IMG/VR virus record: IMGVR_UViG_3300041411_000080
Coordinates: 186,001-250,000 of that record
DNA: 64,000 nucleotides
Strand: one strand, 5' to 3'
The stretch's first letter is position 1. Every line of letters starts with the position of its first letter. Positions 2,081 through 26,061 of this stretch are shown piece by piece. Made by a program: the position numbers and the translations under genes. Under the pieces are notes generated by a model. The model was not told where the DNA came from and ran no database searches. It worked only from the letters and a program-made list of their open reading frames with translations.

Positions 2081-4846
2081 TTACTTGATTGCTTTCTTAG
2101 CAACACCACAGCAAGCGTCAGCTACATCAACGCAATGCTTAGTGATGAACTTGTACAGATCGACGTGTGCTTGAGCAGAGAGCTTCATTGCTGTAGCCAA
2201 TGCATCCACACCTTGTTCGTCACCCTTAACACGACTGTCTGCACCGATTGGCAATGCGCGATCACGAGTAGTACGAATCTTGGATACGCTGCTAACAGCG
2301 CGATCACCCGTAGTGTCAGCCAGCTTACGTGCAATAGCAACGTATGCTTTAGCAAACTTCAGCAGGTTAGCGATATCACCCTTGGACAGTTTGTAAGTAG
2401 AGCTTTCGCTTGTCTTACCAGACTTAACGCCGACTGGAATACCGGTGTGACCCAGTGCTTCGAGTTTGTCGTTACGGGAACTACCGCCAGCTTCACGGAT
2501 CTCAAGTTTGCAACCACCCAACAGACCTTTAGTAAAGGCTGTACTTGGGAAAGCTTCTTTGGTACCACGCAATGCAACAGCTGCATCTAGAGCCTTATCG
2601 ATCTCTTTATCAGAACCTGCACCGATCACGTCATTCAGAGCTTTAATCAGATTGTTCTGGAAAGTCTCAGATGCCTTGATCCCTTTTACAGAGATATCAG
2701 TAGTCAGTTTAAGATCGTCGCCTACTGCTTTAACCAGATTGGTTTCTTCGGTAGACAGATGGCCACGAATACCAGAGATGTCACCGGTAGCGAAGTCAGC
2801 GTCTTTCAATTGAACCAAGCATAGATCGATTTGTTTGTCCAGTGCATCAGCACGAGTCTTAACTTTATCGACCATGCCACTAGCCCACCACTTCTCAACC
2901 TGATGGCTGATGCGATGAGTTGCAGTAGTGATACGGGACAACATACCACGGAAAGATTCCAGAGTAGCCCGATAGGCCAGATCCAAGTCTTTACCGCTGT
3001 AGTCTTCCAGAGCTACTTTAGCAGGAGTCTTATCTTCGAAGTGTGGATCAAGAGCAGCCATCTTCTTACGGAAGGGTTCTACCGAGCCATTCATGAATGC
3101 CAGCAAACCAGCATCATAACGTTCGTTAGCAATACCCAGTTCCAGCAGAGCACGGAAGGTCTCCAGAGATTCTTTCTCTTTCTGAAGTTCTTCAATGGTC
3201 TTGTCACCGATATCCGCTTCCTTCTCTTCAGCATCGCCCCACTCACCAACTTCAGCAGCGTCAGCCATAGCTTCTTCTACATCTTCATCAGTGGTATCGA
3301 CGTCTACATCTTTGACATCCACTTCGCCAGCTTCAAAGTCAGCTGGTTCTTCAGTTTCTTCGATTTCTCCAGCCTCAGCATCCACAGCCCCAGTTTCGTC
3401 AGGGACTTCTTCGCTAGTTTCATCAGGAGACTCGTCAGCAGTTTCTTCAACAGCATCACCGGCATCTTCTTCTACCTCAGCAGTTGCATCAGCTACATCG
3501 TCCATCCCGTCTTGCAGGTCTTCAGAAGTCTGATCAGTTGTGGACTCTTCTACGGTTGCAGCAGAACCGTCACTGTCACCCATGTCACCACCAGCAGGGG
3601 TCAGATCTTCCTCAGCATCAACACCGAGTTCTTCTGCACCTTCCAATGGAGTATCATCGTCTTCAGCATCTGGTTCTTCAGTTACCTGAGTAGCAGTGGT
3701 TTCATCGTCACCCGAAGTAGCCGGAGCTTCAGCTTCTGCAACAATCTCTTCGCCGTTGTTCTGATCATCCGAAACAGTAGTATCGCCAGTCTCAGGAATC
3801 TCACCCGATTGCTCTGGGGTTTCATCTGCAATGAAAGCAGTTTGGTCAGCATCGGAACTAGCAGCTTCAGCAGTTACGTCGGCGGCTTCGTTCTGTTGCT
3901 CTACCTCTTCGGTAACGTCTGGGGTTTCAGTTGAATCATCGGTCGACGTTTCAGCACTCTCATCACCCGTGCTATCGCTAGACTCGGGTGGGCTATCGGC
4001 CAGAGGATCTTCTGTACTAGTATCGTCGACACCCAGATCAGTAGTATCTGTATCACCAGCAGATACATCATCAGTACCCAGATCATCGGGAGTAGACTCA
4101 TCAGTGGTAGTATCGGTACTATCACCCAAGTCTTCAGCGCCATCCAGAGGCGTGTCATCATCTTCTGCTGCATCGCCACCGAGATCTCCCAAATCGTCAG
4201 TACCTGCATCATCGGTACCAGCGGCTACATCACCGAGATCATCGCCACCCGCATCGAGGGTATCATCATTGATGGCTTCGCCGAGTTCTTCGTCGGAGTT
4301 CTCATCAACTTCTGCTGCTTCTTGATGAATGTCTTTAGCGGCAGCTTCTTCCTCTACCTCTTCTTCGATATCATCTTCAGCCGCGTCTTCTTCAGCATTC
4401 TCAGCTGCTTGTTCTTCGGTAACGGCATTACCGTTAACGTCAGTATCTTCACTGGCTTCACCGCCAGTTGCTTCAGCGGTTGCTTCTTGAACGATCTCGT
4501 CCTTAGTCGCAGCAGCTTGTTCACCCTCTTGGAACAGTTCGGTCATCTCAACGGATTGCTCACTGTCACCAGTGGTGGCATCTACAACTGGTGCGCCGTC
4601 AAGAGGAGTGGTATCTTCGGTCTGAGTGATATCAGCTTTGTCGTCTGCTCCGATTTCTTCTTTCGGAGTGGCTTGACCAATATCATCGCCTGCCTCAGTA
4701 GTATCCGCGTCAGGTACGATGGGTGCAACTACTTCTTCAGCATCAGCTGTCGAGATAGCGCCCTGCTCATCAAGTTCCTTAGCAGTCTCTTCAGTGTGAT
4801 CTTCTTTAGACACTCGGAAAAGATTTTGGGAAGTCACTTTCAACAT
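2081..4846 (-). CDS. Internal head protein, phiKZ gp97-like, with a very large acidic propeptide (921 aa)
   Basis: About 600 N-terminal residues are D/E/A/T-rich. ALE/TLE sites (KVALED, ATLES) precede a basic helical C-terminal domain. Confidence 0.7.
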   Translation of the reverse strand: MLKVTSQNLFRVSKEDHTEETAKELDEQGAISTADAEEVVAPIVPDADTTEAGDDIGQATPKEEIGADDKADITQTEDTTPLDGAPVVDATTGDSEQSVEMTELFQEGEQAAATKDEIVQEATAEATGGEASEDTDVNGNAVTEEQAAENAEEDAAEDDIEEEVEEEAAAKDIHQEAAEVDENSDEELGEAINDDTLDAGGDDLGDVAAGTDDAGTDDLGDLGGDAAEDDDTPLDGAEDLGDSTDTTTDESTPDDLGTDDVSAGDTDTTDLGVDDTSTEDPLADSPPESSDSTGDESAETSTDDSTETPDVTEEVEQQNEAADVTAEAASSDADQTAFIADETPEQSGEIPETGDTTVSDDQNNGEEIVAEAEAPATSGDDETTATQVTEEPDAEDDDTPLEGAEELGVDAEEDLTPAGGDMGDSDGSAATVEESTTDQTSEDLQDGMDDVADATAEVEEDAGDAVEETADESPDETSEEVPDETGAVDAEAGEIEETEEPADFEAGEVDVKDVDVDTTDEDVEEAMADAAEVGEWGDAEEKEADIGDKTIEELQKEKESLETFRALLELGIANERYDAGLLAFMNGSVEPFRKKMAALDPHFEDKTPAKVALEDYSGKDLDLAYRATLESFRGMLSRITTATHRISHQVEKWWASGMVDKVKTRADALDKQIDLCLVQLKDADFATGDISGIRGHLSTEETNLVKAVGDDLKLTTDISVKGIKASETFQNNLIKALNDVIGAGSDKEIDKALDAAVALRGTKEAFPSTAFTKGLLGGCKLEIREAGGSSRNDKLEALGHTGIPVGVKSGKTSESSTYKLSKGDIANLLKFAKAYVAIARKLADTTGDRAVSSVSKIRTTRDRALPIGADSRVKGDEQGVDALATAMKLSAQAHVDLYKFITKHCVDVADACCGVAKKAIK

Positions 4847-4948: not shown

Positions 4949-6058
4949 TTAGTTGTTGGCATCACAAACGTTCAAGATGGCGGACATATTCCGCGTCATC
5001 AGGGCCAGCAGGCTGAGGTAGGGGTTAACCAACCAGTTGTTAAATGCTTCCAACAAAAGAATGTAATTGGTTGCAGCTTGTAGGTCAGCACCTTCATAAA
5101 CACCATTCGCTACGTCCTTACGGATCGCATCTAGATACTTAATGAGGTCACCTACACGAGTGGATCTACGACCACGTGCCATTACACCAATACGAGTAGA
5201 CAGATCGGTAGCGGTTGCAATAACCTGACGAAGGATGCTTTGTTCAATCGACCGGGCAAACACATCAAACTCGACGTATTCTGGTGGCGACTTTGGTTCA
5301 GCATCCGAAGGTTGCAACAGAAACTCTTGTCCGATCAATTGCTCGAACTGTTCACCCTCAGGGTTCTTGTTCAGAACGATGAGTTGTTGGTTACCCAACA
5401 TGTGTGGTCCCATGAAACGACTACCCTGATCGTTAAAGCCGTTGACCTTAGCGAAACCTACAGGACTCACATTGCTCAACAGGTTAACCAGTGTATCGAG
5501 TGCATTGGGTTCAGTCGGACGGATCGTCATGATAGCTGGGATAAGCTTCAGCAGCTCATCGTCTTGCCAGCGGTAGTACTTACGAACCATCTGGTCCACA
5601 GACTTTAAATACATCATCAGTCGTTGCGGGTCATTGATGATACGGAAGTTGATAGACAAATTCTGAAGACGTGTATCGATCTTGAACTTACCTTCTTTGT
5701 TCACTCGGTGGTTAGCACGGGATTCAGTATTGATCTGTTCTGCACGGTTGATGATCTTAACGAGGTTAAGACTAATACCAGCTGTACCGTTAGCTACGTC
5801 TTCGATCATGCGTGAAAGGAAACGGATGAGGGTATCGAGTAACCGCATAAATAGGTTCTGGTCCTCACCGGCTTCTAAGCCTAGGGCGAATTGTTTGGTA
5901 GAGCGTTGACGATCATTGCGGTAGTGTTCAACCGATCCAATTAAGGTAAGGATCTCAGCAGCCAGCAAATCATCAGCTTCTAACAGGTCACTCAGTACCT
6001 TAGGATTAGCTTGAACACCCTCAGTTGGATGTTCCTGATATTTAATATCTTCGGTCAT
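4949..6058 (-). CDS. Internal head protein, phiKZ gp96-like (369 aa)
   Basis: Position in the head cluster; GLE site followed by a helical domain as in its neighbours. Confidence 0.55.
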   Translation of the reverse strand: MTEDIKYQEHPTEGVQANPKVLSDLLEADDLLAAEILTLIGSVEHYRNDRQRSTKQFALGLEAGEDQNLFMRLLDTLIRFLSRMIEDVANGTAGISLNLVKIINRAEQINTESRANHRVNKEGKFKIDTRLQNLSINFRIINDPQRLMMYLKSVDQMVRKYYRWQDDELLKLIPAIMTIRPTEPNALDTLVNLLSNVSPVGFAKVNGFNDQGSRFMGPHMLGNQQLIVLNKNPEGEQFEQLIGQEFLLQPSDAEPKSPPEYVEFDVFARSIEQSILRQVIATATDLSTRIGVMARGRRSTRVGDLIKYLDAIRKDVANGVYEGADLQAATNYILLLEAFNNWLVNPYLSLLALMTRNMSAILNVCDANN

Positions 6059-6075
6059 AGCGATACCTAAATAAA

Positions 6076-6097
6076 ACGGGGCACCGAAGTGCCCCGT
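6076..6097. terminator. Hairpin ACGGGGCAC-CGAA-GTGCCCCGT
   Basis: 9-bp perfect stem with an A-run on the left, i.e. a U-tract on the minus strand. Confidence 0.75.
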
Positions 6098-6102
6098 CGA
6101 GA

Positions 6103-7455
6103 TTATGCTTCAGCTTTGGAGCCAGACTCGATAATCTTGATCTGTTGCCCAACTGCAACGCAGTGTGCCTTGGCGTACTTGACCAGATAGTCAACAATCT
6201 CACCAGCCCGTGGCGAAGACTCTTGAACCATTTTACCGACCTTCATAGCCATTTCATCATACACACCTTGGTTCTCTTTGCCGCCTTTGGCCATGGCTCG
6301 CTTAGTAGCCTCCATGAGCTTATTACCGGCTTTAGAGATCTTCTCCGTTTCAGGACGAATCTCTTTGAGTTGTACCAGCAGTGCTTTGATGTCACGCACA
6401 TGTTTACGCAGAGCCGCAGTAGTAGCGACTGGAATATCTTGCGACTTCTGATCGAGAGCAGGACCTTGATCATTCGCATGGCTTACACCAATCGATAGAC
6501 CATGTTCACTGATGTCAAGAGAAAAGTTGCCTGGGAGGCGATCTTTATCAGCTTGCTGTTCAAACAGGAATTGCAGAGGTTTGGAGTACTGGTCAAAGAA
6601 TGCATCCAGTTCTTCTGTTCCAGCGCCGTCGGCATCAAACTTCAGCACGCCCTTGGTCATGCCGTCGAGAAACTTGACAACTGCTTCTGGATAGGCGTAA
6701 GAAGCGAAGTGTGCAAGACCATGTACATCAGGACTTACCACACGATCGAATTCACCTTGAGCATTCAGCAGATATGCACTATTAAAGGTAAAGGTACCTT
6801 CGCCACCAGGAGCTTTGATCTTAGACAGTTGTTGATCCAATTGATCTACGGCACGCTCTACTTGGGATACACCATCCCAGCAGTTCTGTCCGGCACGCTT
6901 GATGAACTCGATGATCCGCTGGACAATCTCCAAGAATCTCTTCAGAGCAGACGAACTGGCTTCTTTCAGATCTTCCAGAGTAATGGTTGCGAGATCATGT
7001 TGTTCACGTGGACTTTTAGCTGTAAAGGATTCCATCGAACCAATCTTAGAGCTAACCCCAAGAACTCGACCAGCTTCACGCAGTTGTACTTGCAACAGCT
7101 TAGCCGACGTCGAATCGATACCGTTAAACCCAGTAGCACGAACGATGGTTTTGTATTCCTCCATCGCGGTTTGCAAGGCAATGAGTTGTTCGGCTTTCTC
7201 TTGCAGAGCGGTATGCTCACAAACAGTTTGCTCGATCATCACCTCAGCATTAGTAACCGGGATATCTTCGATTGGAGCTACCACTACTTCTTCAGTAATA
7301 GGAGTGTCGGTTGGAGCGGTAATAGGTACAGCTGCCGATGGGCTATCGGCTGGACTGACAACAGTTTCTTCTACCATCAGTTCGGCTGGGGGAGCGTCTT
7401 GGAATTCTTCCACGCTTACTCCCACGTCAGCCATTGCTTCTTTAAACAGACTCAT
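6103..7455 (-). CDS. Internal head/inner-body protein, gp93-95 paralog family (450 aa)
   Basis: Acidic N-terminus, GSMESF and ITLED processing-type sites, and the family segment ALQTAMEEY...GIDSTSAKLLQVQL. Confidence 0.7.
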   Translation of the reverse strand: MSLFKEAMADVGVSVEEFQDAPPAELMVEETVVSPADSPSAAVPITAPTDTPITEEVVVAPIEDIPVTNAEVMIEQTVCEHTALQEKAEQLIALQTAMEEYKTIVRATGFNGIDSTSAKLLQVQLREAGRVLGVSSKIGSMESFTAKSPREQHDLATITLEDLKEASSSALKRFLEIVQRIIEFIKRAGQNCWDGVSQVERAVDQLDQQLSKIKAPGGEGTFTFNSAYLLNAQGEFDRVVSPDVHGLAHFASYAYPEAVVKFLDGMTKGVLKFDADGAGTEELDAFFDQYSKPLQFLFEQQADKDRLPGNFSLDISEHGLSIGVSHANDQGPALDQKSQDIPVATTAALRKHVRDIKALLVQLKEIRPETEKISKAGNKLMEATKRAMAKGGKENQGVYDEMAMKVGKMVQESSPRAGEIVDYLVKYAKAHCVAVGQQIKIIESGSKAEA

Positions 7456-22259: not shown

Positions 22260-24365
22260 ATGAGCGAAGATTTCAAACAGGAAGATGTGGTAGGCATTGA
22301 AGCCAAACACATTACCTTTGTAAGTGAACGTGGTGGTCGTAATGACATGCACGTTGTGAAAGAAGTTGTACACCTTAAGGACAAGCGTAGGATTAGTCGA
22401 ATCAAAATGATTCCTAACTACGAAAGACCTTTCTATATCGATCCAGCAGTTTACAAAGAAGAACGACTGAGACCGTACAAAGAGAAGAAGGACTATATGC
22501 CGCTGAATAAGCTGCGTAAGTTCATGACTACTCAGTCTAAGATGCCATTTGCAGTAGCAAAGGCTTTGAAAGATTACAGCATGGGACCTAACCCAAGGAT
22601 GCGACAGTTAAGTCGTAGCCCTTACCTTTATGGCTCTGACGTAAGTTCTGTATGCTGCTTGAAGAACGACTATCGGACCGACTATCCGGGATTGATCTCA
22701 CGTAACACCGTAGCAGGTGGCGACATCGAGACCAACGTATACGAAGATGAGAACGATGGGCAGATCATCTGTATGTCTGTTACTCACAAGTCTAACGTAT
22801 ACCTTGCTTATCTGCGTCATTGGGTACAAGACCTTAAAGATCCCATTAAAGAAACGTTTGAAGAACTCGAACGTATTCCTGAATTGGTTACACTGCGTAA
22901 AGCGCGTAACCTGAACATTCAGATCGAAGTAGTAGAGACTCCAGCTGATATCGTTATTCAGTGCATGAAGCGATTGCATGAATGGAAGCCTGACTTCTTT
23001 GCCTTCTGGAACATCGACTTCGACATGTCCAAAATCTTGGCTACGTTGGAGCGTTATGGGATTGATCCAGCTGACGTGTTCAGTGATCCTAATGTCCCTA
23101 AACAGTTTAAGTACTTCCACTATCGTCAAGACCAAGCGATGAACACCACAGCTTCTGGTGTGACTAAGTCTAAAGGTCCAGAAGATCAGTGGCATTGGAT
23201 TACAGCTCCAGCTAGTTTCCAATGCATCGACTCTATGTCTACGTATCGCGTTACTCGTTTGGCTAAGGGTAAGGAATCCAGTTATGCGTTAGATGCAATC
23301 CTTCGTAAAGAACTAAGCGTGGATGAAGAGTCTGAGATTAAGACAGAAGAAGAACTCAAAGCCTTCATTAAGAACGCTAACAAAGCAATGGAAGACCGTT
23401 CGGGTAGTCACCCTTACTGGAGCGTATCGAACCCAGCTGAAGATGTTATCACAACCGAGACCGTTACTGAGACTATTGAAGTTGAAGACGACGATGAGGA
23501 AGAGACTGAGGAAGGGGAAGATGATGACACCGTACCAGACTTCGATGATGACGATACTGTATCAGCGATCTATGAATTCGAAGAACACACGTACGAAGTA
23601 GAACACCGTGAGCCAGTATGGAAATCGGTTGATGAACTCGTATGGGGTGTTAACGTTTTTGAAGGTTACAAGGTTAGCTTTAAGCTGAACTTTGGTAAGT
23701 TGAAGTTTGCAGAAACCGACCACCTGTTCGGGATCGAATGGCACAAAGTGATGCAGACCCAACATAAGGTCCGCTACGGTCTTTACAACATCATCGACAG
23801 TATTCGACTAGAACAACTCGATGAGAAGATCAATGACTTGGCCAGTTCGATTACATTGTTCTCTAAGTCTTCGGACTTTAAGAACTTTAACTCGAACCCT
23901 AAGCGACTCTGTGACGACATGCACTTCTGGTACCTTAACCGACCAGAGCCATGTGTGATTGGTTCTAGTTCTGACCAGATGGTTCATGACTTAGACAAAT
24001 ACGTTGTGGGTCATGATGGGTGGATCGTTACACTGCCTTCCTATATGGCAGGTCCTAATGGTGTTAAGTGTGTTAAAGACTTACCGGACTATCGTTCGTT
24101 GATCTGGACACACGTAGCTGACTTGGACATCGTATCGACTTACCCTAACGTTAGTCAGATCCTGAACATTGCTCGTGAAACTACGGTTATGGAAACTGCT
24201 GCCATCCAAGGCATTAGCGATCACCATAAACGTGAGCTGGGTGTTAACCTGACGGGTTGCCGTGTGAACGTTCTGGAGATTGGCCAGAAGATTCTTAAGG
24301 CTCCACGCTTGGATGTTATCCTTGCAGCTTATCTTGCCTCTAAAGAAACTGAAGTCCCAAAGTAA
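22260..24365 (+). CDS. Split family-B DNA polymerase, exonuclease plus motif-A subunit (phiKZ gp82-like; 701 aa)
   Basis: ExoI GGDIETN, ExoII FWNIDFD, ExoIII YNIIDS and Pol region II DLDIVSTYP. Motifs B and C are absent, consistent with the split polymerase of these phages. Confidence 0.85.
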   Translation: MSEDFKQEDVVGIEAKHITFVSERGGRNDMHVVKEVVHLKDKRRISRIKMIPNYERPFYIDPAVYKEERLRPYKEKKDYMPLNKLRKFMTTQSKMPFAVAKALKDYSMGPNPRMRQLSRSPYLYGSDVSSVCCLKNDYRTDYPGLISRNTVAGGDIETNVYEDENDGQIICMSVTHKSNVYLAYLRHWVQDLKDPIKETFEELERIPELVTLRKARNLNIQIEVVETPADIVIQCMKRLHEWKPDFFAFWNIDFDMSKILATLERYGIDPADVFSDPNVPKQFKYFHYRQDQAMNTTASGVTKSKGPEDQWHWITAPASFQCIDSMSTYRVTRLAKGKESSYALDAILRKELSVDEESEIKTEEELKAFIKNANKAMEDRSGSHPYWSVSNPAEDVITTETVTETIEVEDDDEEETEEGEDDDTVPDFDDDDTVSAIYEFEEHTYEVEHREPVWKSVDELVWGVNVFEGYKVSFKLNFGKLKFAETDHLFGIEWHKVMQTQHKVRYGLYNIIDSIRLEQLDEKINDLASSITLFSKSSDFKNFNSNPKRLCDDMHFWYLNRPEPCVIGSSSDQMVHDLDKYVVGHDGWIVTLPSYMAGPNGVKCVKDLPDYRSLIWTHVADLDIVSTYPNVSQILNIARETTVMETAAIQGISDHHKRELGVNLTGCRVNVLEIGQKILKAPRLDVILAAYLASKETEVPK
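24356..24362 (+). other. Candidate -1 ribosomal frameshift site C CCA AAG
   Basis: Canonical X XXY YYZ heptamer in phase with the last two polymerase codons, followed immediately by TAA; the -1 frame is open for 125 codons. Confidence 0.55.
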
Positions 24366-24733
24366 CTTACCGGTGGAAGCGTCGCGGAGGATTTGAATGC
24401 TCCTCCGTTGGCGACAAACGTTTCAGTGCACTCTTTGCCTATATGCCGGATGGACGAACTATCGAGTGTCATTATCAGTGTGATGTTAAAGGTTACAATC
24501 CAGGTGGTACAAACTGGAGAGACGGGAAAGGTAAACCTCCTTTGGATACGTCCATAGACCTCTGGGGAGCTTATAAAGATCTTTGGCGAGTGTGGGCCAA
24601 GGCTAACCCGGAACTCATGCGTGAGCTGGCTGTAGGCGCTCAAGCTAATGATCTGTGGTTAAGTGATTGCTTTGCTAATACCGACATCTCCCAAGCCAGA
24701 GCTTTATGCGAACTATTGAATGAGGGTTACTAA
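24356..24733 (+). CDS. NADAR-superfamily-like domain, probably reached by -1 frameshift from the polymerase
   Basis: The -1 frame reads PKVTYRWKRRGGFECSSVGDKRFSALFAYMPDGRTIECHYQCDVKG...ANPELMREL, resembling NADAR FSNF...DG...EHYYQA.K and QNPxL..LL. There is no ATG/GTG/TTG/CTG in frame before 24443 and no RBS at 24443. Confidence 0.6.
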   Translation, partial: PKVTYRWKRRGGFECSSVGDKRFSALFAYMPDGRTIECHYQCDVKGYNPGGTNWRDGKGKPPLDTSIDLWGAYKDLWRVWAKANPELMRELAVGAQANDLWLSDCFANTDISQARALCELLNEGY

Positions 24734-25257
24734 TGAACGAGGAAGCTAAGACGTTCGATGTAAAGAAACTAGACGGTGAAGCAACGACCGCTTACTTGGC
24801 TATGCCAGATGCAATTAAGTTGTTAGTCCGGTGGGTTGAATTACCTGACATGCACATGTTGAATGAGTTGATGGATGTAGCTGAGAAACTCAAAGCTATT
24901 AAGCCATTGCCTGAAGGAACTAACCTGTTCCGTGGATTCTATCCTACGTCTGCTTATCAAGACACTATGGGTTTGATGAAGCGGGATTGGTTGGGGGCTA
25001 ACGTAAAACCTCATCGTGCAGGTGAGACTTATACGTACGCTCTAGAACGTCCTCTAAGCTTCACTACAGATCAATCCATGGCTGAGGCTTACGGTTCAAC
25101 TGTAATACAGCTACACGGCCAACCAGAGGCTTACGTTTGGATTACAGACGAGCTTAACCTGTTGCTTGCCACAGCTAGACGTAAAGAAGCTAAATCGGAG
25201 AAAGAAGTGATTGTACTTCCTCCCTTCGATGCACACTTCACGATCCTTAAGTCATAA
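24733..25257 (+). CDS. Putative R-S-E class ADP-ribosyltransferase (174 aa)
   Basis: LFRG (Arg), LSFTTD..MAEAYG (STS-like) and KSEKEVIV (ExE) in the correct order; TAATG overlap with the NADAR-like ORF. Confidence 0.7.
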   Translation: MNEEAKTFDVKKLDGEATTAYLAMPDAIKLLVRWVELPDMHMLNELMDVAEKLKAIKPLPEGTNLFRGFYPTSAYQDTMGLMKRDWLGANVKPHRAGETYTYALERPLSFTTDQSMAEAYGSTVIQLHGQPEAYVWITDELNLLLATARRKEAKSEKEVIVLPPFDAHFTILKS

Positions 25258-25284
25258 ACGGCTTCCCTTCGGGGAAGCTTTATG
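25253..25284. terminator. Hairpin GCTTCCC-TTCG-GGGAAGC flanked by CATAA and TTATGCCG
   Basis: cUUCGg tetraloop with a 7-bp stem directly after the ART stop codon. Confidence 0.75.
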
Positions 25285-25365: not shown

Positions 25366-26061
25366 ATGATCGAACAGTATCTAGCTTGGGCAGGATTTAG
25401 CAACACTGCCAACCCTGATGATCCAATGGTCAAAGGTGGGCAGGTAGCTTATGCAACTCCGGGTACTTATATCTGGACTGTCCCTGAGGGAGTTACATCT
25501 ATTAGCGTAGTGGTTGTTTCAGCAGGCCAACAAGGTCGTGCTCAAGCAGCTGCCGCAGTTAACGCCGGCCGCGGTGGGTCTGTACGATGGAAGAATAACA
25601 TACCGGTAGTACCGGGTGAAACTTATACCCTCGTGGTAGGTAGTGGTGGTATCGCACAGTCTGTTCCGTCAGGCACAGCTAGTGAACACCAGACTGATTA
25701 CGCATCTAGTGCATTTGGTTTATTCGTGGGAGTTACATCCGCAGAGTCTACACCAAAGTCTGCTGAGATCGGCGGTGGCGATGGCGCGAATGGTGGCTCA
25801 GGTACTGGTCAAACATTCTATGGTGGTAACAGTGCAAGCTTCAATGGTGATAACTCAGTCGTTAACGGTCAAGGTATCACATTACTGAACGTAGTCTCTC
25901 CACGTAGCGGTATTAATGGTGGACCATGTGGCGGTGGCGGTGGTGCAATCGCTGTAAGTAGTGGTAACCGTTCTTGTGGTAAAGGTGGTGACGGCGGTAT
26001 CCGCATCATGTGGGGTAACGGTCGTGCTTACCCAGGTACACAGATTGCTGATCGTCCATAA
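25366..26061 (+). CDS. Glycine-rich protein, tail-fibre/decoration-like (231 aa)
   Basis: TPGTYIWTVPEGVTSISVVVV-G..GG and GGGGG...GKGGDGGIRIMW pattern of phage Gly-rich domains. Confidence 0.6.
   Translation: MIEQYLAWAGFSNTANPDDPMVKGGQVAYATPGTYIWTVPEGVTSISVVVVSAGQQGRAQAAAAVNAGRGGSVRWKNNIPVVPGETYTLVVGSGGIAQSVPSGTASEHQTDYASSAFGLFVGVTSAESTPKSAEIGGGDGANGGSGTGQTFYGGNSASFNGDNSVVNGQGITLLNVVSPRSGINGGPCGGGGGAIAVSSGNRSCGKGGDGGIRIMWGNGRAYPGTQIADRP

Follow-up and report, generated by a model that had tools for sequence, protein, structure and literature searches.

Two phage-encoded enzymes come closest, in proposed purpose, to the system considered here. The orphan NADAR protein AdfN (gp30.3) of phage T4 removes DarT1-made ADP-ribose from DNA (PMC11257639, PMC11125620), and the macrodomain AdfM of chimalliviruses erases DarT2 marks in the phage nucleus (PMC13309987). 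NADAR-fold genes also stand beside ADP-ribosyltransferase (ART) genes in the DarT1-NADAR and YarT-YbiA toxin-antitoxin (TA) pairs (PMC11543638, PMC11125620). From sequence alone, an original prediction proposed a comparable writer/eraser or TA module in IMG/VR virus record IMGVR_UViG_3300041411_000080: a NADAR-like open reading frame (ORF A) and a transferase gene (ORF B), translationally coupled behind a polymerase gene. We analysed the 64,000-nucleotide stretch that carries them (positions 186,001 to 250,000 of the record, hereafter the window). The two frames do abut each other behind the polymerase gene; the evidence however points away from ORF A as a free-standing, translationally coupled gene and towards a frameshift extension of the polymerase. 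On comparative grounds, ORF A is most likely added to the phage DNA polymerase as a C-terminal tail by frameshifting, as would also be the case in phiKZ, and the stretch is best read as the 3' end of a DNA-polymerase operon, not a self-contained writer/eraser cassette.

The window belongs to a complete virus record of 320,858 bp with direct terminal repeats. Its phage, a Pseudomonas jumbo phage, is related to Pseudomonas phage 201phi2-1: with 201phi2-1 gp144 its polymerase shares 78% identity at the DNA level and 79% at the protein level, and the virion genes flanking the polymerase have the same order in 201phi2-1, Viktualia, Psa21 and the window. The 701-amino-acid polymerase ORF contains an exonuclease DIE motif and motif A, motifs B and C being absent from it, and is the N-terminal subunit (DNAP-N) of the split B-family DNA polymerase of nucleus-forming phages, whose subunits in phiKZ are gp82 (DNAP-N), gp50 (DNAP-C) and gp155 (Rhc, the RNase H-clamp protein) (bioRxiv 10.64898/2026.09.30.755723). 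The features of the locus are:

22260-24365, + strand: DNAP-N (DNA polymerase N-terminal subunit, 701 amino acids), homologue of phiKZ gp82 and 201phi2-1 gp144; matches phrog_3011, DNA polymerase, with E value 4.9e-228

22716-22736, + strand: exonuclease DIE motif in DNAP-N, read from the sequence

24120-24149, + strand: polymerase motif A in DNAP-N, read from the sequence

24356-24362, + strand: C CCA AAG, a slippery heptamer of the X XXY YYZ type read in the polymerase frame and proposed as the site of the -1 frameshift; the TAA that ends the polymerase (24363-24365) follows immediately

24356-24733, + strand: ORF A, a predicted 125-codon NADAR-fold domain in the -1 frame of the polymerase; matches phrog_9995 (E value 7.6e-51, residues 5-125); predicted as the C-terminal 125 residues of an 824-amino-acid DNAP-N fusion

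24722-24726, + strand: Shine-Dalgarno-like GAGGG, 6 nucleotides 5' of the ORF B ATG, read from the sequence

24733-25257, + strand: ORF B, a 174-amino-acid R-S-E class mono-ADP-ribosyltransferase as judged by its AlphaFold2 fold and by R67, S109 and E156-x-E158

25260-25279, + strand: hairpin with an 8-bp stem and a UUCG loop, followed by UUUAU; folding free energy -16.3 kcal/mol, z -2.9 against shuffles

The ORF A frame opens at 24353 and is closed by the TAA at 24731-24733. The original prediction had overlooked that its first 30 codons lack a start: ATG, GTG, TTG, CTG and ATN codons are all absent in frame between 24353 and the ATG at 24443, thus ORF A cannot be an ordinary independent cistron. 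These start-less 30 codons (YRWKRRGGFECSSVGDKRFSALFA...) are the best-conserved part of the family. Among eight relatives, the differences in this stretch number 133, 163 and 377 at codon positions 1, 2 and 3, respectively, and 291 synonymous codon changes stand against 172 non-synonymous ones. Both the third-position bias and the synonymous excess indicate that the stretch is translated. In 12 relatives the first start codon comes only after the conserved motif; in phiKZ it comes at codon 88 of ORF A, which is why only the 38-amino-acid "PHIKZ082.1" is annotated there.

The DNAP-N gene ends in GTC CCA AAG TAA and ORF A lies in its -1 frame, so that a classical slippery heptamer abuts the polymerase stop. 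Indeed, all 18 loci in which ORF A occupies the -1 frame, among them those of phiKZ, PA7, PhiPA3, 201phi2-1, Viktualia, Phabio and Noxifer, carry a register-correct X XXA AAG heptamer bordering the N-terminus of the domain (CCCAAAG in 12, GGGAAAG in 1 and AAAAAAG in 6, one locus, L030, holding two register-correct heptamers). The codon preceding the heptamer encodes V, S, N, P, A, L or D, and its third base is always the one that the heptamer requires; a variable amino acid next to a fixed third base argues for selection on the nucleotides and not on the protein. Such heptamers are rare: counted over window ORFs of at least 200 amino acids, in-frame X XXA AAG occurs 4 times in ~22,000 codons, and CCCAAAG only at 24356. 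Moreover, the heptamer lies 16 codons from the conserved motif, a distance that matches the N-terminal part of those family members that are free-standing. Where an insert of five codons brings a GTG start, as in 201phi2-1 and Viktualia, the frame is nonetheless kept. We rejected sequencing error as the cause of the frame break, because more than 40 independent genomes have the same layout, and we consider transcriptional slippage unlikely because CCCAAAG contains no long homopolymer.

From this comparative evidence we conclude with good confidence that a programmed -1 frameshift at C CCA AAG expresses ORF A as a DNAP-N fusion, the predicted product being an 824-amino-acid DNAP-N-NADAR protein (the 701-amino-acid subunit and 123 further codons). 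A precedent is the E. coli dnaX gene, in which a programmed -1 frameshift at A AAA AAG yields two products, tau and gamma, from one replicase subunit gene. The window site resembles it in its X XXA AAG type, in being decoded by tRNA-Lys within the gene of a replicase subunit, and in its two predicted products. In dnaX, the shifted reading ends after a single further codon, which shortens the protein, and the shift makes use of a Shine-Dalgarno site upstream and a hairpin downstream; the window shift, in contrast, would add a 123-residue enzyme-like domain at a heptamer abutted by the 0-frame stop, with no conserved RNA stimulator found. A polymerase-ORF A frameshift arrangement was not reported in the literature searched. 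The structure of the three-subunit phiKZ polymerase, described in an October 2026 preprint, was obtained with constructs of the annotated gp82 coding sequence only (bioRxiv 10.64898/2026.09.30.755723).

The layout also bears on how ORF A has been annotated. Its homologues form more than 400 sequence clusters at 60-75% identity, and it is matched in 85 named phage records, most of which give it a hypothetical label only. Annotation was checked in four records, those of phiKZ, a phiKZ-like phage, Psa21 and Viktualia, and in all of them ORF A is missing, truncated or fragmented. In phiKZ (L097, NC_004629) it occupies 2498-2878 and is unannotated besides the 38-amino-acid stub mentioned above; the 38-amino-acid family phrog_33573 appears to be built from such stubs. 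The Viktualia record (L002, 5615-5983) splits it into three small ORFs, and the Psa21 record annotates it only as a 97-amino-acid piece from an internal ATG.

We next consider the fold of ORF A, which the original prediction had called NADAR-like. The NADAR (YbiA) fold is an alpha+beta fold whose core helices have small beta hairpins at their sides. Its AlphaFold2 model has a predicted local distance difference test score (pLDDT) of 96.6. Compared with 48,161 PDB chains by VIA-align, the model found the Geobacter DarG1-type NADAR 8bat (Z 8.6, 117 residues aligned), E. coli YbiA (2b3w, Z 7.6) and the Phytophthora NADAR 8bau (Z 7.3) in the first three places, the next chain falling to Z 3.8. The three best PDB matches are thus all NADARs, and the earlier call stands. 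In the ESM Atlas, ORF A matched a viral cluster with a template modelling score (TM) of 0.74, 21% of whose members carry PF22397 (NADAR-DarT1), and in AFDB it matched, with TM 0.54, an entry whose name, riboflavin-intermediate N-glycosidase, corresponds to the activity reported for YbiA. With Foldseek the NADAR match in the PDB was barely visible (E value 9.7); it emerged clearly only from the exhaustive VIA-align comparison. As modelled, ORF A very probably has a NADAR fold.

Known NADARs carry a catalytic Glu and Lys on the first helix and an acidic residue or His in the last strand (E88/K95/D171 in the E. coli C7 NADAR; E36/K43/His in AdfN). In ORF A, the invariant E37 and K45 flank helix 36-44, the first long helix, and the near-invariant D104 lies beside strand 101-103, the last strand. 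The sole segment returned by hhalign pairs D104 with the AdfN His, in a match that is not significant; as no significant hhalign alignment was obtained, the residues were mapped by motif and secondary structure only. The candidate active site E37/K45/D104 thus placed on the model resembles the Glu/Lys/Asp set of DarT1-type NADARs (PMC11543638, PMC11125620).

Like T4 AdfN, ORF A is a phage-encoded single NADAR-fold domain without a cognate toxin; both have the same top three structural neighbours, the Geobacter DarG1 NADAR, the Phytophthora NADAR and YbiA (PMC11257639), and both carry their candidate Glu and Lys on the first long helix. The two differ in that no sequence or profile similarity is detectable between them and ORF A has 125 amino acids against 152 in AdfN. 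Furthermore, AdfN is free-standing, whereas ORF A lacks a start codon, sits on a DNA polymerase by the proposed frameshift, and would have its activity by analogy. AdfM, the nuclear DarG2-like macrodomain that counters DarTG2, belongs to the same phage family and shares the purpose proposed for ORF A, removal of ADP-ribose from phage DNA in the phage nucleus (PMC13309987). AdfM has a macro fold, is a separate imported protein and acts on thymine adducts; by analogy, ORF A, with its NADAR fold, would ride on the polymerase and act on guanine adducts. The genome of the window has a macrodomain gene of its own (G000:C1:181711-182046, minus strand, locus L104), ~4 kb before the window start, which matches a DarG antitoxin model with E value 2.4e-33 and is likely, from this similarity, the AdfM counter-DarTG2 factor of chimalliviruses (PMC13309987).

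Outside the DNAP-N locus the ORF A domain is found in further settings. Viral NADARs are known as fusions with SLOG/YAcAr and DUF4326 domains and as domains packaged in virion proteins (PMC9503650, PMC7824862). Fusions of the ORF A domain likewise comprise YAcAr followed by the domain (L020), DUF4326, the domain and YAcAr (L031), and DUF4326 followed by the domain (L061). At three loci (L062-L064; 2959-4758 in L062, 2956-4809 in L064) it is fused in frame to the N-terminus of a protein 98% of whose length can be aligned with the RNase H-type protein found in phiKZ-like phages. The layout of this partner, an RNase H and a C-terminal part of ~300 residues, is that of Rhc, the third polymerase subunit, and the fusion is, judged by this layout, a second, independent attachment of the ORF A domain to a polymerase subunit. 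As a free-standing gene, the domain also lies near the start (within ~2-7 kb) of Achromobacter and Delftia phage records of N4 size, and a giant virion protein, phrog_16227 (profile length 4,401 residues), contains it as an insert (L059, 1-6369, and L087, 1-6270), so that it is probably packaged. These three modes of deployment, Rhc fusion, free-standing gene and virion insert, all suit an enzyme protecting phage DNA. Nine further loci (L053, L058, L060, L065, L066, L068, L073, L075 and L076) carry the domain within open frames of 1,100-2,100 amino acids or more; the two of them that were scanned, L058 and L075, gave no phrog_16227 match.

The second frame of the locus, ORF B, overlaps the stop codon of ORF A with its ATG, the A at 24733 being common to both (TAATG). 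Its AlphaFold2 model has pLDDT 83.4 and a predicted TM score (pTM) of 0.78. Eleven ARTs were found among the top 12 Foldseek matches, and the top 11 VIA-align matches are all ARTs (Z 5.0-7.2, ~115-135 residues, covering ~14-174). Among the structures matched are a Listeria ART effector, ExoS, Vis, Certhrax, SpvB, VahC, C3 and an Rhs toxin domain; in the ESM Atlas the model fell with DRAT and ADPrib_exo_Tox clusters (TM 0.55-0.62). A weak match (Z 3.6) is the anti-CRISPR chain 6kyf, taken here to be AcrIF11. The ordered motifs noticed in the original prediction are present in the 174-amino-acid ORF: LFRG (F66-R67-G68, R67 at 24931-24933), SFTT (S109-F-T111, S109 at 25057-25059) and SEKE (E156-K-E158, 25198-25206), spaced by 42 and 49 residues. 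They are no chance occurrence, since R67, G68 and E158 are invariant, and S109 nearly so (at least 90%), in an alignment of 94 family sequences. The ART fold is built on a split beta-sheet core that binds NAD+. The model adds this fold, with an intact R-S-E triad, so the transferase call holds. We are thus confident, as far as a model allows, that ORF B folds as a transferase whose catalytic triad is intact; protein arginine is the acceptor suggested by its E-x-E motif and by the structures nearest to it.

ORF B has only 9 close homologues, all of 164-174 amino acids; a profile search of 1.8 billion cluster representatives extended the family to 152 representatives, with the consensus LYRGF / SFTTD / TQxEVIxLP. 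No Pfam match was found for the window protein (E value at most 1), and 12 of the 94 aligned relatives match PF07357 DRAT weakly, the best with E value 1.7e-4, below the curated cut-off. ORF B shares its fold and the ordered Arg, Ser-x-Thr and Glu-x-Glu with the R-S-E mono-ARTs ExoS, Vis, Certhrax, SpvB, C3, DraT and T4 Alt, ModA and ModB; it differs from them in having no Pfam match, 10-16% identity to solved structures and a compact length of 174 amino acids without a targeting domain. ORF B-type domains are also found inside proteins of 800-2,100 amino acids (P0169, P0253, P0260, P0267 and P0179), together with DUF5662, GNAT, a ResIII/SNF2 helicase or SUKH. Such multidomain architectures resemble phage and plasmid proteins linked to counter-defence. 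On an unrelated phage contig (L100, L101), two ORF B-family paralogues stand in tandem (3461-3985 and 3989-4522).

The survey of co-occurrence that the original prediction had called for went against a dedicated pair. In hidden Markov model (HMM) searches of all fetched loci, both domains lie within 5 kb of each other only in the window, L004 and L005, which form one clade, and in L099; among the 87 fetched loci with an ORF A match, a transferase occurs in the window's own clade only. The TAATG-type overlap recurs in L004, and in L005 two other genes separate ORF A from the transferase. In L099, a Phabio-like contig, a transferase of 37% identity directly follows an ORF A of 68% identity, with stop and start overlapping; this pairing could go back to an ancient linkage that was often lost, or one slot at the operon end may have received insertions repeatedly. 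ORF A stands behind the polymerase, with no transferase, in dozens of Pseudomonas chimalliviruses, and every relative examined (201phi2-1, Viktualia, Psa21, phiKZ and Phabio) has it without the transferase; the slot that follows ORF A is filled by unrelated genes in 201phi2-1 and empty in phiKZ and Psa21. Products gp141 and gp142, which occupy this slot in 201phi2-1, were compared with ORF B and found unrelated. In L006, the 5' neighbour of a 73%-identical transferase is a different ORF of 131 amino acids (1-396), not ORF A; the contig starts there.

Transferase neighbourhoods were surveyed with the 9-sequence alignment, by tblastn against named phages and by single contig look-ups. Relatives of ORF B lie among unrelated genes in Vibrio phage BONAISHI, Xanthomonas phage RTH11, Erwinia phage pEa_SNUABM_54, Ralstonia phages RP12 and RP31, Shewanella phage SXP01 and several metagenomic phages, and those of Serratia jumbo phages likewise stand in other neighbourhoods; at least 8 such contexts are without ORF A within 4-5 kb. 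Conversely, no Vibrio, Xanthomonas, Erwinia, Ralstonia, Shewanella or Serratia phage is among the 85 records with an ORF A match. Neither ORF A nor ORF B matches DarT or DarG in PADLOC at E values up to 1, and NCBIfam gave none either. Profile searches of PDB sequences returned only noise. As in the DarT1-NADAR and YarT-YbiA pairs, an ART gene stands here beside a NADAR-fold gene (PMC11543638, PMC11125620); unlike in those pairs, the gene order is different, ORF B is of the R-S-E class and not DarT or YarT, the two genes appear to be inherited independently, and ORF A is part of the polymerase reading unit. From their distribution we hold it highly probable that ORF A and ORF B are inherited independently, and a dedicated ORF A/ORF B module is not supported; some functional interplay between them may exist. 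Of the module proposed originally, the fold assignments and the adjacency remain; the dedicated, co-inherited pair does not, each gene occurring without the other.

The hairpin behind ORF B is present as first described, with its 8-bp stem, and is the probable transcript end or stabiliser of the polymerase-ORF A-ORF B unit. Its T-run is short, which is why a scan for consensus terminators passed over it; a similar hairpin lies 3' of the transferase gene in L099. The next gene downstream is

25366-26061, + strand: glycine-rich protein (Gly_rich_2), matching PF21722 with E value 1.4e-9

and is probably not part of the ORF A/ORF B system. It is weakly similar to tail-fibre families; a glycine-rich protein is also found 3' of the transferase in L004 and L006. 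Within DNAP-N, an insert at residues 407-432 (23478-23555) holds a run of acidic residues (EVEDDDEEETEEGEDDD...).

All together, we favour with moderate confidence a reading in which a -1 frameshift yields an 824-amino-acid polymerase-NADAR fusion, probably a replisome-tethered de-ADP-ribosylase, with ORF B as accessory cargo. Ribosomes ending DNAP-N would slip back one base on C CCA AAG before the TAA and read 123 more codons, the fusion thus being made beside the normal 701-amino-acid subunit. By analogy, tethering to DNAP-N would carry the NADAR domain into the phage nucleus and to the replisome, where it would most likely strip ADP-ribose or a related N-glycosidic adduct from template DNA. 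This may counter DarT1-like guanine ADP-ribosylation, in parallel with the phage's own AdfM-like macrodomain gene. ORF B would start translation itself, through its GAGGG site and the ATG overlapping the ORF A stop, as an optional cargo in a variable slot at the end of the operon; it would probably use NAD+ to modify a host factor, and the UUCG hairpin would close the unit. The parts of this reading are not equally secure. That ORF A removes ADP-ribose from DNA is a tentative assignment by analogy, to which we give somewhat less than an even chance. More doubtful is the wider proposal that in Pseudomonas chimalliviruses, including phiKZ, a replisome-tethered, nucleus-imported NADAR erases DarT1-like guanine-ADP-ribose lesions as the fork meets them, that other phages fuse it to Rhc, and that the neighbouring transferase is offensive with the same chemistry, phage DNA being protected.

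Several observations weigh against this reading. At the heptamer we found no conserved stimulatory RNA structure or upstream Shine-Dalgarno site, the abutting 0-frame stop being the only common element: a GGAGGA/UCCUCC hairpin in the window scores no better than shuffled sequence (z -0.25) and is not conserved, and the consensus fold of eight relatives at the junction reaches -3.9 kcal/mol, covariation being almost nil. Across the site, contigs of a phiKZ-like phage assembled from RNA libraries are collinear, and a raw-read run contained no phage reads; the contigs speak weakly against an indel in the transcript consensus and are compatible with rare transcript slippage. The Psa21-like sister clade has no heptamer, its ORF A being in the +1 frame, and in one lineage (L079, L081) ORF A lies in the polymerase frame directly 3' of a TAG stop (2998-3000), thus the route of ORF A expression is not uniform. 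As for the NADAR assignment, ORF A has no Pfam match at E values up to 1, the NADAR models PF08719, PF22397 and PF08010 included, and hhalign of the ORF A family against a 48-sequence alignment of T4 AdfN (PF08010) was not significant in local or global mode (probability 0.5%); across the whole phage genome, no PF22397 or PF08719 match was found at E values up to 10. NADAR membership thus rests on fold, context and candidate residues. The Glu-Lys spacing in ORF A is 8 residues, not 7, and for ORF B the family consensus is Q-x-E, whereas ORF B itself has E-x-E.

The seven loci of the Psa21-like clade (L003, which is Psa21, 6050-6130; L009, L010, L012, L014, L017 and L018, ~2990-3040) share a junction of their own. 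The conserved N-terminus of ORF A overlaps the last ~7 polymerase codons, GAAAAGAAG lies just upstream in all 7, and the codon before the first conserved Tyr is TTG, GTG, CTG, ACG or CGG. In L079 and L081 the first start codon of ORF A lies inside the domain, which suggests readthrough or recoding of the TAG. The polymerase gene of this lineage is broken at motif A by ~420 nucleotides rich in stops (~2230-2653), which look like an intron-type insert.

Two other explanations concern ORF A itself. It might be made without a frameshift, either alone, as a 96-amino-acid protein from the ATG at 24443 or by unconventional re-initiation after the polymerase stop, or it might be the remnant of a decaying gene. 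Gene callers do give products of 96-97 amino acids (P0010, P0024 and others, as well as Psa21), an ATG or GTG stands at the domain start in PhiPA3, 201phi2-1 and Viktualia, and the lack of a stimulatory RNA element would fit. However, a product starting at M30 would lack the invariant S16, G19, D20, R22, S24, A25 and A28, the first start of phiKZ would yield only 38 amino acids of a fully conserved 125-amino-acid domain, and the stretch without a start, which in the window holds no near-cognate start codon either, is under purifying selection in the ORF A frame. Together with the conservation of the heptamer nucleotides while the protein context varies, this makes an origin without frameshifting quite improbable. 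Alternatively, ORF A could be fused by frameshift and have another role: binding of DNA or of a replisome partner, a handle for nuclear import, or a glycosidase acting on another base adduct or on a soluble ADP-ribose-derived signal. Its lack of any match to NADAR models at the sequence level, its length of 125 amino acids against 150-220 in known NADARs and its weakly scoring language-model neighbours, the DUF4326 and DUF488 clusters, are in keeping with such a role, and soluble ADP-ribose derivatives are, as Iyer et al. argue, the substrates of many phage NADARs (PMC9503650). Against it, the NADAR match is specific, as the drop from Z 7.3 to 3.8 indicates, the fusion partners SLOG and DUF4326 are typical of NADARs, and invariant polar residues (D20, R22, S24, D32, E37, K45 and K58), along with the near-invariant D104, are what would be expected of an enzyme. 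We regard a non-hydrolase role as a real though unlikely alternative to the tethered de-ADP-ribosylase.

The remaining alternatives concern ORF B. In the pair proposed originally, the NADAR would reverse or limit the mark set by the transferase, leaving the phage immune. The overlapping codons in the window and L004, the second lineage, L099, in which a distant transferase again directly follows ORF A, and the Q-x-E consensus of the transferase family would all agree with this, and NADARs do reverse guanine ADP-ribosylation by R-S-E enzymes such as ScARP and pair with ARTs in the DarT1 and YarT systems (PMC11543638, PMC11125620). ORF A is nevertheless tied by frame to the polymerase and by fusion to Rhc, not to the transferase. 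The many transferase contexts without ORF A, in genera absent from its matches, the 85 named ORF A records, of which the relatives examined in detail have no adjacent transferase, the two genes intervening in L005, the unrelated or empty slot in 201phi2-1, phiKZ and Psa21, and the lack of a DarT or DarG match all speak against a dedicated pair, for which the chances are low. It is also unlikely, if less so, that ORF B acts on something other than a host protein, whether by ADP-ribosylating DNA or RNA, as do pierisin, ScARP and some TA ARTs, as an NADase, or as an anti-defence enzyme directed at one immune protein, as is AcrIF11. The Q-x-E consensus would be compatible with such targets, as would the long family members with DUF5662, GNAT, SNF2/ResIII or SUKH, whose likeness to counter-defence proteins is a matter of general background. 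The weak match to the anti-CRISPR chain 6kyf points the same way. The window protein itself, however, has E-x-E, its best structural neighbours (ExoS, Vis, Certhrax, SpvB, C3 and DRAT) are protein-arginine or -asparagine transferases, and no nucleic-acid ART is among the matches listed.

What is new at this locus is the frameshift-fused NADAR-like domain; counter-defence by phage NADARs and frameshifting at X XXA AAG were already known, and ORF B is an R-S-E transferase of a known class. Within that class, ORF B defines an uncharacterised family of ~150 sequence clusters, in jumbo phages and in large multidomain proteins, and this family is a fresh candidate for host take-over or anti-defence chemistry. 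For ORF A, the analysis corrects the annotation of a conserved 125-codon element in phages of the phiKZ family, the principal model of nucleus-forming phages and a therapeutic candidate. If the proposed fusion is made, it would be a clear case of recoding that attaches an anti-defence enzyme to a phage replicase, and fusion to the polymerase would also solve the import of the enzyme into the phage nucleus. A share of DNAP-N would then carry a 14-kDa enzyme-like tail, and the composition of the replisome, the counter-defence repertoire of these phages and their host range on DarTG1 strains would need to be re-examined.

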